A stretch of DNA of 64,000 nt from Styela clava (GCF_964204865.1 NC_135254.1:15190001-15254000); one strand, 5' to 3'. Shown: positions 10,762 to 20,427, counted from the stretch's first letter. The notes: generated from the sequence alone by a model not told the origin. Program-made: numbers and translations.

Positions 10762-11864
10762 GATAAAACAATATCATCAATTCCTTAATTAGGATGAAGG
10801 AAATAGATCAGGCGCCTACAAGGATCATCAGAATAGGAATAAAGATTGCTTGCGCTTTTGAACTTTTCATTCAATTGTTTTGGTTTTCTTTTCTGAAAAT
10901 CTAGATTGTATCACCAGCCATGATCGTTTCCAATTCAAAAATATATATCAAATATATATATTCTATAAACAGAAATGTGTTTATGATTATCTTATGTTTA
11001 CGTATTATTAGAATACACAGGACAATACATGCAAGTTTGCTTTTGGTATCAAAAACACTTTTGGTCCCTAGATTTTCTTTCTTCGTTAGTTTGGTCAGGG
11101 AGCATAAATAGTCTACGTGTAAGTCTTTTCCTCATTCAGAATGACAGAGGGAAATAGTGGATGAAAAGCCAATTAACTAAGCCCATTAAAGTACATTAAC
11201 TCAGCACCGTCAAAAATAGTTTTTGGCAAACAATTGCAACAAATAATACATGTGCAACAAAACACCCAGAAGTGTGAGCATTGAGCAAGCTCATGCAGAA
11301 AATTTTTTTCTCCCGACAAATGCAAAGACAGGTCTGAGGAGTAAATCTGACTCACTCATATATATATATAATTGCAATGTACCGGCAATAAAACGAGCCA
11401 CATTGAAATATAAGTATTAGAGTACGTCGCTATAATACTTTTGGTAAAATTCAAGAAATGGCATTTTCTGCGTTTCTAATATCTCGAATACGTTTCTTGA
11501 ATGTTACCATTCCGAAGTTCCTATGTTGCAAACCTGGCATCCTAGTTATTATCGAACCCACTAACAATCAGTTATAATATTGATAAATAACCCACACCTT
11601 CCCTTCACAAATAGCGGACATTGAAGCGTTGCTCATTCAAAACTATTCGCATATCGTATTGCTTCATTCCAGTTACCGAAGGCTTTCTTCAAACTACTCT
11701 ATTATTAGCGCTTGTCGATATTATTGTAAGTCAGCTATGGATACCGTTGTTTGCGCAGGCTTTCTTCTTTGTGTTAGTCGCATCGTATAAGGTAAATAGT
11801 AGCCTAATTCGTTGTCGAACCACGTATTAAGTTGGTCAGAAATCTTAACTTACATGAATTGGCA

Positions 11865-14800
11865 ATGGGCTCTTCGGGATCGAAAAATAGCGTAACTGTA
11901 CCAACTATTGGACAAAGCAAAGGTAATTTTAGTTGCACTCCTTGAAAAGTGTAATGAATATAACGTATAATGTATTGCCTATTTAGTTCACCAAGATTAA
12001 ATATTCTGACATTTATTATTATTATTACTTGGCTTCAGTTAGTGATTTGAGTTTTGCATCTTTACTACGTCGACTCGAGGAAAAACAGACTGAAATCGAA
12101 CGGTTGAAAGCTGCAAACCAAGCCCAACGAGAGGAGATTAAGAAATTGAAATATGAATTGGAGACCAGTCGTATATCAGCGACGATACAGAAACCAATCT
12201 CAAACAATGTGAGTAGCTGTCAAAAAATAACTTAGCATCAGCATGTTTGGGAACGTGCCTATACTCTATATTCCTGTATAATTTAACGTAATAGCTCTAA
12301 CCTGACTCACTTTAGATTAGATGTCAAGGAGCAAACAATATCTGCGTTGCCAGATATTGAAAATTTGCACAATCGAATTGAAAAGCTTGTCATCGTAAAT
12401 CACATAAGGAATGCTGTTCCCATGCAATAACAAGCATTATTAGTACTTAGTTGAAAGTATTGAAATCCATAATAACCATTAGTATAGGGATACAAGCATA
12501 TACCCACAGATACGGTCTTCTTATCTATCTCGTAGTAAAAATATCACAGCTTCACTATTATTGAAACTCGCGGGAATCGGCAAACAAATATTTTTCTCCA
12601 AATTGTTATAATTCGACGGTTTCTATGTGAGCTCAGCAAATGGCAATTTGGTATAACGAACGATCTGTTCCAATGATAGATTTATTCTGGATTTTAGCCA
12701 TCCTAACAGTTTTAAATAAGCGCTGTTTAAAGTTGGGGTTTGCAATTTAAGGGTTCAGACCTTCAGACAAAATGTACAAGATAATAATCTGAAAGAATTA
12801 GATTTACCGGTACTTTCTTATTGATATTTTTATTGTAACGTATGGGAAGCATTATGGCTTATAACATACCGGATTACCGGTATTTGGTTTCTGAATCTTT
12901 AATTGCACCTTCCTATTGTGTTTCCGCAGGAACAACCAAATTTCAATTCTTCAAATATTCTGACACCTGAAGATGTTATTTCGTCTCAAGCTCCTCAAGG
13001 CAACATGCCGAAGATTGGAGATCACGTGGTATCAATGTGGGGCGCAAGCAAGTGGCAATATTTTACAGGTAAACATGGGCTTATACCTAAAACAGTACGT
13101 ATTTGATAGACAATTATGGATTGGAAACCCACACACTATAAGTTGAATGCGAGTTTCACTCTCACATGACCTGACCTTTGTCACGAACGCTGGTTTTCGG
13201 GAGATGATAAAAACACGAATTCGATATTATTTCAAATTACTTCAAAATTACCTCATATATATTTTAGAATTCAACAAGTTAGAATTCAATTCGTTTCAAA
13301 ATTGTACAATTTTTTGTGGCCATTACCTCGGGCAGCACAGAAAAATTCTGGGATAAGGCTTTCAATAAAGTTTTTATTTTAAAAGTATCGAATCAACTTG
13401 ACTTTTATTTTCTTTAACAGCGACGATTGTTGGATTTGATTCCTCCAGCCTAAAGTATACAATAGAATGGGATGATGGCGATCCCACTGGACGAGTAATA
13501 GATTACTACAATCTTGCACTCGATAAAGTACCTTCTCCCGATCAAATTGGAGTTGGATCAAAAGTGCTGTTTCACCAGGGAGAGTGAGTATTTCACATGA
13601 ACATTTTCGTTGATTGTTTTCGTATGATTCATCAAAAGACAACATTGTTGACATTTGAGAACAAACAAAATATTTATTTTAGAATAAAAGAATATCCGCC
13701 AAAACTCAGACTAACTCCCTGTTGGTGATTATTAGCCTACTATACCCACTGTGTAACCTTATCAAAAAAATCAACTCTGAATTGTGCAGAAAAATTGAAT
13801 CGATGAACGTATTATTTGTTTGTCAGTGGTGCCATGATTCCCTAGTTACCTAGTATATTAGACCATCTTTTTCCATTTATGTAGAAGCTAGGTTTAGGGG
13901 ACAGACAGTCCTCATTGGCAATTTTTTATGTTGGGTTCAAGTTGTTTACTTTCTAGTTATATGTTTGGTATTTATCTGGTTTCACTATTTAGACTATATA
14001 GATATTTGTGTCCACTGCTTCTTGAGCAGACTATTCAGTTTATCAAGTATTTCGTAGTTTTTTGTTTTAAATTTTATTTTGTTGTTTGGTCTCAAAGTTG
14101 AGAAAGAATATGTTTACGATAACTGTATATTTAACAAAAAAGCATAGATATAGAAATATCTCATCCATATCAATTTGTTTCAATCACAATTCATGAACAT
14201 GAATAATTTGAAATGAGGTATCTTAATGTACGTAGTTTGCATTAATATATATTCTTTATGTCCATTCTGTTCAGGTGTGCAACTGCAGAGTAATAATCGA
14301 ACATGAGTGTCAAGCGCTAAGTGTATATTATAGCAAAAATATCTTTTCGTACACTTTTTAATATTTTTCAATATTGTCGCGTCTATCGGTAATATTCTCA
14401 TGTTTTCCGCTTTATAGCAGAGAATATAATCAAAATTATATACAGAAAAAAGTTTAAAGTTGTTCTTTAGATACAAGCAGCAAGAAGTACACGGAGTTAC
14501 AAGATCTGGCGGATTCAGATGGCACCAGGGAGAAATTACTAAAAGTGTCAGACAGCCGGACGGTACAAGGAAATACCAAGGCAAACATACAAAGGGGGCA
14601 AGTGACGGAAAATGGGTGTTGTACAAGGTGATGTTTAAACTATCACCAATGAAAGATAGCCACTTTCGTAATGTTCAAAAAGTAATATTGTTTTGTTGTT
14701 ATATTAGGACTATTCTGAATATTTCTACAATTACAAAATAGATGATTTTCGAATGCCACCGAACGTATTTGACATTCTGGACTCCGTAACGGGTTAGTGA

Positions 14801-17800
14801 ACTATCTATGTATATACTTAGTTTAAAACAACATAATATGTTATGAAGGTCAAAACGAAAGTATTTTGCTTTTATTTGCAACATTTCTTCAATCAGGGCC
14901 ATCCGAAGGAACTCGCCCGCAGCAATCTGAACAAGGAAGTATAGATGTTTTCATATCCTATGCTAAAGTTAACAGTCCTGCAGCAATAAAAAATCATGAA
15001 ATAGAGTCAAGTCTTCTTCCTCCATCGTATGAAGAAGTTATGATTGAAGAGTTATGCGATCCAAGAGATATAGTATCGCACTTGAAGGAAATGGGTTAGT
15101 GATTATAATGTAAAAAATGCAGAACATGTCACAGGTAACAGTCAAGGGGCACAATAAGATTTATATGCCATTTTATAGATCAAAACTTGTTACACTTTTG
15201 TCTGATTCAACAAGATCAAATCAGCAGTATGTTGTGCTATGGCATAATCTGCGCATAATATGTTTCGCGGAACAGGCTATTATAAATAATATTTAGCAAA
15301 AAAATGAAAAAAAAATTGATAATTTAACCCAGTGCCTTTTATACTTTTTCTGTGCGACTCTGTAATTTATTGAATATTTTTATTAATATGATGCATATAA
15401 CGTTATAGGAGTTAGTGTTTACATCACAGAGGATATAGTTGATGATAATGAAGCAGGTCTGTTGGAAATTGTATCGGCTTTAAAACGGTCTAAAATCTTT
15501 ATCGCATGTCTAAGCGATGAATACGCGAGTAACGACAGGTGTCGGATGGAATTTCAGTATGCTAAGAAAACAATGAGAATACCTGTTATCCCGCTGGTGG
15601 TAAGATCATTTGAAGGCATTCTGTCTTTTTTTTACAATCAACTGTTCCGTAACAGTCAAATTGTTTCAGGTCGGCACGGGTTCATTTCAGTGGAAAATGA
15701 CTGTTGTCGGACTTCTCATTGCGGGGGAACTTTACATTCATTTCAAAGACAAAAGCGTGGAAGGATTCAAAATGAACGAACTTTTCCGCTCTATCAAGAA
15801 ACATATTCCCGAACTTCAACTAAAAAACGTTAATTTTGCGGCGACTGGAAACGCCTCATTAGATCTCATAACAACGCCAGGACTAACTCTAACAGGTGTG
15901 TTTTTTTAATATTCTCGCCCGGGATACAAACGTCCACTTGCTATATGCGAGAATACGCATAGCCTATTTAATTTAACAATGGGTGAAAAAATGCATGGTT
16001 ATGACAACTGACCCGTGGCCTCTGGCCCACTTCGCCAACACATTTAGCCTGGTGGAATTCAACTAAATATTTACTAGACTAATATTGAAATATATTATCA
16101 TAACTTTACAATCATTGAATTTTGAAAAAGCGCAATCGCATTTTATGCATGCGTACAATTCACCTCATGCAAGTCAAGTGCTTCAGCTCATAATCATCAT
16201 ACCTCAATCTACCATGCATGTACGCTCTGTATTTATGTACCAAATTAAAATTTACGGTAGGGGTGTGTAACATTTTTTGTCGGTGGGCCACATAACCAAA
16301 TTCAGACATCTAGCTGGGCCCCAAAACAAAATTAGTTTTCCTATGTACACAACGAATTAAAAAAATATCGACTACTAGAGCGCCGGGGGAAAGGCAAGAG
16401 AAGAGAATGCGGCTATCGCTTTTCCTTCCACTAATAAAGGCACCGGGCAAAACGGCAACAAAATTAACGCAGAGACAAGAGGAAATATCATTAAATATTT
16501 TTACCTATGTAAGTGACTTTTCAATTAAGGATAAACTGTCAAATTAGGATTTAATGCTTGATGATGAAAAATCTGAGTGTTGATAAGGGCCACACTTAAT
16601 GGCTTGGCGAGACGGGTTGTGGCCCGCGGGCCGTAACTAACAACAAGCTTCTCTGCAATATTTCCTGTTCCGCCTTAAATGCCAACTTCTGCAAATTCTA
16701 ATATCAAGGTGCGCAACTCGAGACGGGAGTGCCTGACATTTTCTTCAGCTATTGTTGGTCAAACTCCAAGTCTGCTGCTGATAGAAATCAAATATCAAAA
16801 TATATTGGAAACGAGTGGAATGATCCAAGGGAAATTGCAGACAAGTTAGCACAAGCAAGCGGAGCTGCCACGTGGATCGACATAAAACGTCTAGAAAGTG
16901 CTGCCGATGGCATGGGCATGGTAATCAAATAGATATACCTCTTATATATATACCAAACATTATATTCTGGGTAGAAAATTCAATAGCATCATCGAAACGA
17001 ACTGTCAAGTCAGGAGATTATATTGAATATTATAAAAACATTATTACAGATATAAATGATCATGCGATACGATGTCCCCATTTTCGAGGACAAACGATTT
17101 TGGACAAAGAAATGTGAAAATGCGTTCAAAACCAGCGTTATGCTATACCATATGATTACTTGTAGCTCTTATAATCATATTCAGTCAGACAGAATTTTAA
17201 ATCACCAAGTATTTTATTACATTACTGAATATAATATTAATTTACAATTTTACGTTTAGTTTGGACAAATCGCTTCAGCTATTGGAGATTGCAAAGCGGC
17301 TGTGGCGTGTGTTAGCAATGAATATGCCAACAGCGATAATTGTAGAATGGAGTTACAATATGCTGGTTCTTCCTTGCAAAAACCGCTCATTATTCTCGTT
17401 GTGGGTGAGTCATAACCATAAAGTACTTTCAACGGTGATGAACCTAAGTTGCAAAAATGTAAAATAAACTATCTTTCGTTATCAAGAAAGCTAACAAACT
17501 ATTGTGCAGCTTGAACGAACAAGTAGACTCAATTTTTCCCCCATTGTTTCCAGTCTATCGTACACTTAATGCTGTATTGTATATCGTTGTCCTAATGCAT
17601 GTAGTAATATTTTAGATCGTTTTTTATCTAAAATGTCTGTGATTCGGGAAATGTTCTTTGTTCTAATTCACAAGAAAATTCACACTCTTTAGTTGTGTCA
17701 TTATGTTGTCTTCTTTCTGAAACAGTTTTAAAATAGCCTACATAATTTAATGAAAATCATGATCTTTTAAACGTTTTTATGGCGGCGACAAAGGATGTCA

Positions 17801-20427
17801 CAAGTAACAGTCAATGAAGCACAAATATATTTATAGCTCATTTCATAAATCAAACCTTTTGTCTGATTCATCAAGGAAAATCGTCCAGCATTCTGTTTAC
17901 TCTGGAGAATATAGTATTATTGTGTTATATTTGTTCTCCATTGTTACAGCATATCCACAGTAAACAGTTCATTGGCATCTTCTTTAGTCATGTCGTTGAT
18001 CGTATTTGTTCTGCTTTATTTATGAGAACAGTAAAATCTGGCTTAGAGACGAGTTTGTAAATATCATGCAGCCGACTATTAGGGAATCAAAAAAAATTGA
18101 CTCTGGCACCGCATTTCAACAAACTTCGCTTCTGTCCCGACTCACAAGACTTCAAAATGTCGACTCTGTATGCAATTTTAATGTAAAAGCAAACACTCTA
18201 TCCCGACTTTATCCCACTGCTATGTAACAGTCAACATGGTCGATCAAATAATAATCTTTTATAATATATATATATCAAAGGCGAAGGGTCAGAGTGGAAG
18301 GAAACCGTAGTAGGGAAAGTGTCGTTGCTCGGAAATGCCACAATTAATATGCAAAATATAACAAGCACTGAGGAACTTGATCGAAAAATCACGGAAATCA
18401 AGTAAGTTGGTCGTGATGATTTAGGCTTCAATTTCAATAGCAAACAAGAGAGCTATGCTCAAATATATGGACACGTAGCGCCACCCAGTGGCAATAATTT
18501 TGATGACGTCATAGCGAAAAAAAGTCTTCGGGAGAAAAATTTTATCTTTAACCACTGAAAATATCAAAGCAATTGGTCCAGTATTCGAAGAGAAAAGCGA
18601 TTTTTTTAAAAATGGAGACGGAGACAAATAACAATAACAACAAAATTTTGAAACGATCGTTATGGCCACTAAACGTGTCCAATAATTCGTTATCGGGTAC
18701 AATGAAGTATGCGTACCAAGTATTTGTACCTAAAATTATGGCCTAACCTTAACCAGGTACACATACTACGTCGCGGTGTCCGCCATCTTGGTACGCATAC
18801 TTCAGGAGCGCCCGTTGTTGTAATGCCCGTTCTTGTTGTTAAAATCACAAATAACTGATTACAGTTTTGTTGTTACATGTTGTCAGAAACGCAATTTTTG
18901 AGGTAGATGCTTTTGAGGAATCGTTGGGTGATAGTGTTCTAAGAGACGAAAGTGAAAAGGCATCTTCCGCGAATGAGCGAGTGGTAACGCTGAAAAAGAA
19001 GAAGAGAGCGGTAAAATTTTTCAAAGAAAAATCAAAAATTGTGACAAGATCTATTGTACCAACTTCACCTATAAAGTTCAAAGCTCCAATGATTGGAGAC
19101 CATGTCGTCTGTTTGCATCAAGGATGGGCTTACTATACAGCCACTGTGGTCGAGTTTGACCCAACCGATCTTGTTTACACTGTTGATTGGGACGACGGCG
19201 ATCCTTCCGGCAGAGTGCAATCTTATCAGGTAATGGAGAATTTAGTTTTCAATTTTCATTATTCGCAATTTGAATCACAATTATACCTATAATTAAAAAA
19301 TGCAATTTTTATTCAATTTGTGTTTGCAACCTGATAAAAAGATATATCAATGGTAGGCTATTTGTGCCAAGTTCAGAAACTGTTTATGCTGTCAGCATAG
19401 TTAAACCACTGGCAACAGATTTTGATAGTGGCATATCATGGTAACAAAATTCTAGTAATTCGAAGAACGCCTCGTCTTCCGAACTGGGTAAAATTGTGAT
19501 TTGCTGTCTTATACAGGTCATATGTATATATATATATATATATATATACAACCATGATACGTCTGTTTTTCTTTATATATATATATATATATATATAAGA
19601 GATAGTGGAGATACCGAATGGTATGAATCCATTGAAAAGTTACTTTGCTATAGCACGTTTTAAAGAGAGGCTTCGAGCGCACATTCAATATTGTTCCTTT
19701 TTCGCACAGGATGTTGCAAAGGATGTTATTCCTGATTCTTCTGAAATAGGGGTTGGATCAATTGTAATTTTTCCACAAGGCTCCTATGGTGAAACTGAGG
19801 GAAATAATACAGGTGGAGAGCGTTATCACCAAGGCAAAATTACTTCAATTGACACAAGAGAAGATGGAATCACACGGTAAAAATACATTGTATTTTGCAT
19901 AAAATATAAACAAATAAATGGTATTTTGAGTGAAAATTAGATGAGAGTCGGTATAATTTTAAAAGCAATTAATAGACATCTGAGTCAAACACAATAAAAA
20001 GTAAATTGAACGAAGTGCGACTCGAAATATTCCCTATCCAGTTTCAGAACTTGATGTACTGTCAAACTGCCACATATTGTGATTTAACGTAGTAATACTT
20101 CATTTTTGTAGAAGATGTATTTTTTGTGATTGAGCTGTGGATAGCGTCTTTATGATAACTATTACAGAACAAGCAAATTCCTTAAATACAAATACGTTGT
20201 GTCGTAACTAAATTAGATGCTTATTATAAAATGTAGATCTTTGACCCTTAATTCTTAAATTTAGGTATAATGGAATACACACGAAAAATAAAGATGATGG
20301 CAAGTGGGTGACATTCAGAGGCTACAATTCTTCTTTCCAAAATTTGACGTTGAATCAACTACGTATTTCACCGAATGCTATGGATGCACTTATGGCTTGC
20401 AAGCAAGCTTTCAATTTGAATGGCTGA
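11865..20427 (+). CDS. Myristoylated coiled-coil / tandem-Tudor / TIR-TIR / tandem-Tudor protein, ~845 aa, 15 exons
   Basis: Exons 11865-11922, 12039-12208, 12930-13068, 13421-13583, 14471-14627, 14708-14792, 14897-15094, 15409-15599, 15670-15895, 16709-16920, 17260-17404, 18281-18401, 18887-19229, 19710-19876 and 20265-20427 join in frame (2538 nt). The N-terminus is MGSSGSK. TIR motifs: DVFISY...IFIACLSDEYASNDRCRMEFQYA and DIFFSY...AVACVSNEYANSDNCRMELQYA. Two internal repeats read IGDHVV...Y(F/Y)TAT(I/V)V.FD...YT(I/V)(E/D)WDDGDP.GRV...IGVGS.V.F.QG...HQG.IT...DGKWV. Confidence 0.85.
16258..16655. mobile_element. Degenerate non-autonomous hAT-like element in an intron of the TIR gene
   Basis: Starts TAGGGGTGTGTAAC with GGGCCACA subterminal motifs. 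The end region carries GGCCCGCGGGCCG, a subterminal motif typical of hAT MITEs that also occurs at ~1286 and, partially, ~61460. TSD not confirmed. Confidence 0.4.
18694..18814. mobile_element. ~120 bp MITE; related copies at ~60095-60156 and ~63634-63745
   Basis: TGAAGTATGCGTACCAAG near the left end and CTTGGTACGCATACTTCA near the right end form an inverted repeat. The same GAAGTATG(C/T)G(C/T)ACCAAG...GGTACACA core recurs at 60105 and 63643. Confidence 0.55.

Follow-up and report, generated by a model that had tools for sequence, protein, structure and literature searches.

A single-copy Styela clava gene joins two TIR domains to two predicted tandem-Tudor modules and belongs to a family older than animals

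From bacteria to plants and animals, innate immunity uses TIR domains as a common currency. To our knowledge, only SARM1 is established as a TIR enzyme in animals, and little is understood about the ancestral TIR toolkit of animals. A 64,000-nt stretch of the Styela clava genome (GCF_964204865.1 NC_135254.1:15190001-15254000; hereafter the window, to which all coordinates refer) contains, between positions 11865 and 20427 of the plus strand, what an initial annotation took for one gene encoding a myristoylated protein with two TIR domains bracketed by two Tudor-like repeats. The locus thus raises the question of whether such a protein is really made, whether it is peculiar to Styela, and whether it would act as an enzyme or as an adaptor. 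The domain order obtained in our analysis is acylation motif, coiled coil, tandem Tudor, TIR1, TIR2, flexible linker and tandem Tudor.

The coding sequence is distributed over 15 exons, all on the plus strand, separated by GT..AG introns with consistent phases. It comprises 2538 nt (845 codons), is free of internal stops and ends with TGA at 20425-20427. The intact 15-exon open reading frame (ORF) of ~845 amino acids (aa) that had been claimed for the locus is matched exon for exon by a public entry, "uncharacterized protein LOC120344759 [Styela clava]" (845 aa; P0159 below): in an exon-by-exon BLAST, the translations of all 15 exons were collinear on P0159, with 96-100% identity. Searches with the window were run exon by exon, while full-length searches and fold predictions were all performed on P0159, which differs from the window translation at approximately four residues.

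Expression of the locus was examined in public RNA data. Of the words sampled from the 8.6-kb stretch, 30% of which is exonic, eight runs contained 6-26%, and five of these runs 20-26%. Transcript contigs from four runs of three studies (X1, X2, X4 and X6) were aligned to positions 11500-17450. Spliced contigs reproduced the exact junctions 11922|12039, 12208|12930, 13068|13421, 13583|14471 and 14627|14708 (introns 1-5) and 14792|14897, 15094|15409, 15599|15670, 15895|16709 and 16920|17260 (introns 6-10). The introns skipped by the contigs are all GT..AG, exactly as predicted, and a loose contig end at 17405 continues into the beginning of exon 12. The proposed splicing is therefore reproduced from junction 1-2 to junction 10-11, reading on into exon 12; junctions 12-13, 13-14 and 14-15 have the public model and homologues as their basis.

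One may ask whether the frame results from the merging of separate genes, or of a pseudogene, across introns. The 2564-nt contig of run X1 (record 1) is spliced from exon 1 to beyond exon 10, where 984 nt remain, as much as exons 11-15 and a short 3′ untranslated region (UTR) would take up, and it thus weighs against a split locus. The independently made 845-aa public model is identical in structure, and the same full-length architecture recurs in complete transcriptome ORFs of distant taxa. A gene-model artefact is thus effectively refuted, and we consider it extremely improbable. When the 377-Mb assembly was searched for paralogues, only the 11865-20427 locus matched, from which it follows that the gene is single-copy. 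Our first guess, that it belongs to a lineage-expanded immune family, was dropped, as this search of the Styela assembly found no paralogue. We conclude that the locus is one expressed, single-copy S. clava gene encoding one protein.

Approximately 37 single-base differences were seen between window positions 11700-17450 and transcript contigs of different runs, most contigs being 95-99% identical to the window. These differences look like polymorphism between individuals or haplotypes, not editing.

Exon 1 (11865-11922) carries the start codon and the sequence MGSSGSK, with Gly2, Ser6 and Lys7. Transcript contigs run contiguously into this exon from 11759 (X4) and 11814 (X2), placing the 5′ UTR at 11759-11864 as a minimum. 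Since an in-frame stop is present at 11805-11807 and no in-frame ATG occurs from there to 11865, MGSSGSK is the N-terminus of the protein, an assignment that is well supported. The sequence was compared with the PROSITE-type myristoylation pattern G-{EDRKHPFYW}-x(2)-[STAGCN]-{P} and fits it, so that the N-myristoyltransferase consensus noticed by the initial annotation now stands on a transcript-supported N-terminus. The motif is also found family-wide, across phyla. In our alignment of 48 sequences (A1, the basis of all counts out of 48 given here), an N-terminal MG start fitting the pattern is present in 25 homologues, 21 of which have Cys3 (MGCxxS). MGCxxS is known from Src-family kinases and G-alpha subunits as the classical signal for myristoylation plus palmitoylation. 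In four further homologues, the motif is found at a Met within the first 60 residues, which points to over-extended gene models, and most of the remaining ones are truncated or have another N-terminal domain in place of the motif. The protein is, on this motif evidence, probably membrane-anchored by N-myristoylation.

The motif is followed by exon 2 (12039-12208), which encodes the coiled coil expected from the initial annotation: residues 25-69 are predicted as a long helix in the AlphaFold2 model, with a predicted local distance difference test score (pLDDT) of 87-89, and matches to coiled-coil families are weak only. The region in front of the first Tudor module is swapped among lineages. 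In homologue P0028 the N-terminal place is taken by a PH domain and in P0053 by EF-hands, and in many cnidarian-like members (P0148, P0152-P0161, P0172) the motif is followed by a small zinc finger (zf-Di19). Such swaps suggest that one shared core receives its membrane or calcium input in different ways.

The AlphaFold2 model of P0159, built from the 48-sequence alignment, has a mean pLDDT of 80.3 and a predicted template modelling score (pTM) of 0.64. It contains two beta-rich modules (residues ~103-256 and 689-840) and two alpha/beta domains (~271-442 and 469-640), with disorder at residues 1-23, 70-98 and 640-680. In a Foldseek search with the complete model, the tandem Tudors of 53BP1, UHRF1 and SETDB1 (E 4e-5 to 1e-4, probability 1.00) came out on top, together with the plant TIRs RPP1, RPV1 and RUN1. 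Both pairs of domains are internally related. Exon 4 is 55% identical to residues 708-760 (E 3.5e-16), confirming the second copy of the beta-rich repeat, and exons 5, 13, 14 and 15 are 41-47% identical to the opposite module; the TIR1 and TIR2 cores are 49-50% identical. As can be seen, the Tudor-TIR-TIR-Tudor order is mirror-like and is not a simple tandem duplication. Intron positions are unlike between the two Tudor modules.

The same architecture is found well outside Styela. A search with exon 13 retrieved 137 proteins at E ≤ 0.001, and several of those with lengths of 740-850 aa show two matched stretches. Full-length homologues with the same domain order occur in the tunicates Clavelina and Ciona (LOC100182474), the sea urchin Lytechinus, the acoel Convolutriloba and the cnidarians Nematostella (LOC116604300), Actinia, Acropora, Montipora, Desmophyllum, Hydra and Rhopilema, as well as in the choanoflagellate Salpingoeca rosetta (PTSG_10079) and in complete transcriptome ORFs that we take to be choanoflagellate. 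Their names are all "uncharacterized", "hypothetical", "TIR domain-containing" or "Tudor domain-containing". Vertebrates, arthropods, nematodes and molluscs are absent from the named hits of our homology searches, a pattern that suggests loss. The Tudor-TIR-TIR-Tudor family is orthologous throughout and predates animals; the Styela gene is therefore no lineage oddity, being a member of a widespread old family.

The first Tudor module (residues ~103-256) is encoded by exons 3-6 (12930-13068, 13421-13583, 14471-14627 and 14708-14792). In P0159, residues 107-145 match the Pfam model Tudor_3 (Crb2 Tudor) at 35.2 bits (cut-off 25.8), LBR_tudor reaches 23.8 bits (cut-off 22), and the strands of the module have pLDDT values of ~90. 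Exons 13-15 (18887-19229, 19710-19876 and 20265-20427) encode the end of TIR2, a disordered basic linker (residues ~640-680) and the second module (residues ~689-840), followed by the stop codon. In Styela, the match of the second module to PTM_DIR17_Tudor (21.5 bits) is below the cut-off of 27.2, which the same model exceeds in homologues P0033 and P0008. With single exons, Pfam scores for the Tudor modules are below threshold throughout, and the module calls thus rest on the full public protein and on homologues; exon 13 gives Tudor-clan matches to PTM_DIR17_Tudor (3.5e-4) and Tudor_3 (1.3e-3). Among homologues, SGF29_Tudor, PTM_DIR17_Tudor, LBR_tudor and DUF4537 pass their cut-offs. For Tudor_5 and 53-BP1_Tudor, the cut-off is exceeded in P0001 only, a separate protein that has multiple Tudor units and lacks TIR domains. 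The family profile matches the KDM4A hybrid Tudor at 1.7e-4.

Fold scores for the module come from the model (pLDDT 85.8) of P0037, a 199-aa database fragment that is 50% identical to residues 667-837. This model matched the SETDB1 Tudor with Z 11.4/11.3 over 121 residues, SGF29 with Z 8.6, the UHRF1 tandem Tudor domain (TTD) with 8.1 and 53BP1 with 6.4. Both modules are, as modelled, tandem Tudors of two five-stranded SH3-like barrels each. The initial annotation had described the repeats as 53BP1-type: the tandem-Tudor part of that description is upheld by the Tudor_3 and Foldseek matches, but by Z score the closest relatives are SETDB1 and SGF29, and 53BP1 comes only after them. A long hairpin is inserted into the second barrel and has invariant residues of its own, F-x-Q-G-x-Y and His.

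In module 1, a set of aromatic and acidic residues is strongly conserved: W113 in 41/48 sequences, W139 in 44/48, D141 in 48/48 and D143 in 45/48. Together with F121, all of these are kept in the 33 most similar sequences of the alignment. Their codons lie at 13038-13040 (W113), 13062-13064 (F121), 13468-13470 (W139), 13474-13476 (D141) and 13480-13482 (D143). In module 2, W723, D725 and D727 are near-invariant, and a profile alignment places W723, within a W-D-D-G motif, opposite the Phe of the KDM4A sequence N-F-D-D-G, which is a cage residue. By comparison with the 53BP1 and SMN cages, and by the KDM4A profile alignment, the W/F/W/D/D set of module 1 presumably occupies canonical cage positions. 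Its W/F/W pocket with two Asp would resemble a methyl-lysine or methyl-arginine cage and is a candidate for one. The Tudor modules may most simply be regarded as regulatory ligand readers.

Two proteins retrieved alongside the family, P0001 (1084 aa) and P0004 (2489 aa), contain 14-17 tandem Tudor units related to barrel A of the Styela gene; in P0001, Tudor_5 scores 395 bits over 15 stretches. They constitute a separate multi-Tudor family without TIR domains.

Between the two modules lie TIR1 (residues ~271-442), encoded by exons 7-9 (14897-15094, 15409-15599 and 15670-15895), and TIR2 (residues ~469-622), encoded by exons 10-12 (16709-16920, 17260-17404 and 18281-18401), with its last helix continuing into exon 13. 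The two TIR domains of the initial annotation could be recognized from single exons. Exon 8 alone matched the Pfam models TIR_2 at 30.0 bits (cut-off 28) and TIR at 25.8 (cut-off 21.3), and exon 11 alone matched them at 28.9 and 22.0 bits, both past the cut-offs. In P0159, TIR_2 reached 75.5 bits over two stretches and scored higher than TIR. With pLDDT values mostly >85, both domains are modelled with the flavodoxin-like TIR fold. In VIA-align comparisons, TIR1 (residues 270-442) matched the TIR of SPARTA with Z 14.9 and RUN1, L6, RPP1 and C. elegans TIR-1 with Z 12.7-13.6. TIR2 (residues 470-627) matched the human SARM1 TIR with Z 15.8 (root mean square deviation (rmsd) 2.1 Å, 128 residues) and the Hydra TRR-2 TIR with Z 15.8; further matches were MyD88 (14.9), IL-1RAcPb (14.9) and AbTir (14.0). 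As far as models can tell, the TIR fold is certain.

Both TIRs keep the Glu of helix alphaC, as had been noticed at the outset: Glu371 (GAA, 15549-15551) in TIR1 and Glu564 (GAG, 17350-17352) in TIR2. In alignments, these residues fall on the Glu of C-x-x-E-L in Cat1, SNC1, RPPT-TIR and RPP1. When the PDB was searched with the sequence of exon 8, the only TIR matches were to families reported as NAD-cleaving. Plant and bacterial TIRs gave the best PDB sequence matches overall (Cat1 at 1.2e-4; SNC1, RPPT-TIR, RPP1 and L6). E371 is kept in 39/48 homologues, including all 35 most similar sequences of the alignment, the named ones of which are all animals, and E564 in 46/48. TIR2 has many invariant polar residues, namely S482, D501, R503, D520, N560, E564 and Q566. 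Defence-system models of PADLOC gave ThsB-like matches only, and these were weak (E 5e-3 to 6e-5).

We regard as the best reading, held tentatively and with somewhat less than even confidence, that the protein is a membrane-tethered TIR enzyme that cleaves nicotinamide adenine dinucleotide (NAD+) and is gated by its Tudor modules. The N-myristate would tether the protein to the membrane, with palmitate at Cys3 adding to the anchor in most orthologues, and the coiled coil would pair or cluster it. The two tandem-Tudor modules would serve as ligand-binding regulators, and the built-in TIR1-TIR2 pair as the output. TIR2, the better conserved of the two, would use Glu564 to cleave NAD+ or to make an NAD-derived signal, a step modelled on SARM1 and on plant and bacterial TIRs, while TIR1 would be the partner that completes a two-TIR active assembly. 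An enzymatic output is favoured because the polar positions around Glu564 are conserved in TIR2, because the best Pfam model is TIR_2, because the few PDB sequence matches are to TIR families reported as NAD-cleaving, and because the TIR families known to us to predate animals are enzymes. When the TIR1-TIR2 core (268-632) and Tudor module 2 (686-845) were modelled as a complex, in a run without controls, the score was 0.00, which counts neither for nor against docking.

Several observations weigh against this best reading. The Trp of the WxxxE motif is absent: TIR1 has Arg367 at this position, which is variable in the family, and TIR2 has Asn560 (47/48). In AbTir, activity and product choice are influenced by this Trp, which precedes the Glu by four residues (bioRxiv 10.1101/2023.05.19.541320). 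Mammalian TLR TIRs likewise conserve the WxxxE region (bioRxiv 10.1101/2023.05.19.541320), and it follows that the Glu alone does not predict catalysis: the alphaC Glu is necessary but not sufficient for assignment to the enzyme class. What the initial annotation had taken as a catalytic sign is thus present in both TIRs, but it is shared with non-enzymatic TLR TIRs and is not accompanied by the Trp. At the TIR1 Glu position, six homologues have Gln, four of them choanoflagellate-type sequences. Fold scores do not separate enzymatic from scaffold TIRs, since MyD88, IL-1RAcPb and TRR-2 score in the same range. In module 2, the position matching W113 (near residues 697-699) is not Trp; residue 697 is Cys/Ser, with His in the consensus. 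Within the transcribed 5′ UTR, an out-of-frame ATG at 11855, 10 nt before the start codon, opens an upstream ORF of 13 codons (11855-11896) that overlaps the main start codon and may dampen translation. Finally, lipidation, localisation and activity are predictions from sequence, and the ligand of the Tudor modules is putative.

The missing Trp and the fold scores of scaffold TIRs also speak for a non-enzymatic membrane sorting adaptor resembling TRAM or MAL, in which the TIR pair would seed or bridge assemblies with receptor TIRs (TLR-like, IL-1R-like or, in choanoflagellates, Kinase-TLR proteins) and the Tudor modules would recruit downstream partners. We consider such an adaptor, the main rival of the enzymatic reading, possible, if somewhat doubtful. 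The MGSSGSK N-terminus and the PH domain of one homologue fit it, and TRAM is delivered to membranes through a myristoylation site together with a polybasic region (PMC3369926). The top folds of TIR2 include scaffold TIRs (Hydra TRR-2, 15.8; MyD88 and IL-1RAcPb, both 14.9), and a C-x-x-E motif with Cys at position 2 is found in TLRs too (bioRxiv 10.1101/2023.05.19.541320). However, the family is present in choanoflagellates, where MyD88 was not detected (PMC6040629). That Glu564 and the polar residues next to it are conserved almost absolutely over such an evolutionary distance is more typical of an active site, and the TIR_2 type and the PDB matches of exon 8 lean towards enzymatic classes.

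A TIR enzyme acting on another substrate, or one with a non-immune, housekeeping role, has also to be considered. Some plant TIRs have reported 2′,3′-cyclic nucleotide monophosphate (2′,3′-cNMP) synthetase or nuclease activity, and such an enzyme could act on nucleic acids, or serve as a metabolic or neuronal regulator of NAD+, while the ligand of its barrels would be nucleic acid or a lipid head group in place of methylated protein. Orthologues that are single-copy and evolve slowly suggest a core cellular function more than an immune receptor under rapid evolution. Nucleic acids are also among the ligands of SH3-like and Tudor barrels, and lower fold matches of the P0037 model include PWWP-ssDNA (single-stranded DNA), KOW, NusG and Spt5 at Z 6-7.4; the Trp/Phe/Trp pocket with its two Asp could hold any cationic group. 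Yet no sign of nucleic-acid binding emerged from our analysis, the modules best match readers of histone methyl marks, and a site of action in chromatin or RNA granules is disfavoured by the predicted membrane anchor. We therefore judge these variants improbable, and return to the NAD+-cleaving enzyme as the preferred reading.

The gene is already public as an uncharacterised protein, and encodes a TIR protein with an undescribed combination of sensor and anchor. The statement of the initial annotation that no characterised protein has this architecture holds in that no describing paper was found, but the architecture is already on record, uncharacterised, as that of a widespread old family. 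In our literature search, no paper was found to connect TIR with Tudor domains and none to describe or test the Tudor-TIR-TIR-Tudor family, although the invertebrate TIR survey of Gerdol 2017, which lay outside this search, may already list it. A predicted lipid anchor, a built-in TIR pair and candidate methyl-mark-reader modules are three things not known together. In its fullest form, the proposal would be a pre-metazoan TIR pathway in which a dually acylated, membrane-resident tandem-TIR enzyme is activated by the binding of a methylated protein, or of another cationic ligand, to its tandem-Tudor modules, and releases an NAD-derived messenger; taken as a whole, this is rather unlikely. If true, the coupling of a methyl-mark reader to a TIR would be a sensor-effector logic undescribed in animals, plants and bacteria. 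If the protein is an adaptor only, the "sorting adaptor" principle of TRAM and MAL would reach far past vertebrates. The family is old, strongly conserved and, in the Styela genome, single-copy, and so offers a tractable way into TIR roles that preceded TLR-MyD88 signalling, with orthologues in the genetically manipulable organisms Ciona, Nematostella, Hydra and Salpingoeca rosetta.

Two introns contain sequences of a different kind. In intron 9, positions 16077-16673 have high-depth cover by RNA contigs in all four runs (up to 182 in X4), and many of these contigs have loose ends that run into unrelated sequence. The segment looks like a dispersed, transcribed repeat; the label of miniature inverted-repeat transposable element (MITE) was not applied to it, as no terminal inverted repeats were found. 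In intron 13, at ~19520-19600, two (TA)n microsatellite runs lie ~25 bases apart.

Among known systems, SARM1 and its C. elegans counterpart TIR-1 are the first to be compared. Like the Styela protein, they are intracellular animal TIR proteins with regulatory domains, an oligomerisation element and the alphaC Glu, and the fold of the SARM1 TIR superposes on TIR2 (Z 15.8, rmsd 2.1 Å, 128 residues). In contrast, SARM1 has a single TIR preceded by two SAM domains and by an ARM domain that senses nicotinamide mononucleotide (NMN) and NAD, whereas the Styela protein has tandem TIRs, Tudor modules and a predicted lipid anchor. The WxxxE Trp of SARM1 is W638. No Pfam match to ARM or SAM was obtained with P0159 or six homologues, which indicates that the Styela protein is not a SARM1 orthologue. 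SARM1 homologues occur in choanoflagellates (PMC6040629), as does the Tudor-TIR-TIR-Tudor family.

TRAM (TICAM2) and MAL (TIRAP) are likewise TIR proteins held at the membrane, TRAM by N-myristoylation and MAL by lipid binding, and the PH domain at the N-terminus of homologue P0028 adds to the likeness. The TRAM N-terminus resembles MGSSGSK. Both adaptors are vertebrate inventions and, unlike the Styela protein, have a single TIR and no Tudor modules. For TRAM, N-myristoylation is documented as the means of membrane targeting (PMC3369926).

With the tandem Tudor readers SETDB1, SGF29, UHRF1 TTD, KDM4A and 53BP1/Crb2, the Styela protein shares two SH3-like barrels in tandem. Those readers are nuclear chromatin proteins, whereas the Styela protein is predicted to be lipid-anchored, with its reader fused to TIRs and with a long hairpin insertion in the second barrel of the family. 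Plant TIR and TNL proteins and bacterial TIRs (RUN1, RPP1, L6, SPARTA TIR-APAZ, Cat1, ThsB and AbTir) have in common with it the TIR_2 type and the C-x-x-E-L motif of alphaC; they provide the best PDB sequence matches and fold Z scores of 12.7-15.2. Activity of these TIRs needs two or more TIRs packed together, and a tandem TIR would supply both in one chain. Their sensors are different, including NB-LRR, Argonaute and CARF, and their WxxxE Trp is absent from the Styela protein.

Among the partner domains reported for choanoflagellate TIRs are Ank, Arm, SH2 and kinase domains, with Tudor not among them (Richter et al., PMC6040629). The ecTIR-DC families are, in their summary description, intracellular TIR proteins that are widespread in invertebrates, apparently absent from vertebrates and without an assigned function (PMC6321704). 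As far as this summary goes, the Styela family fits the description.

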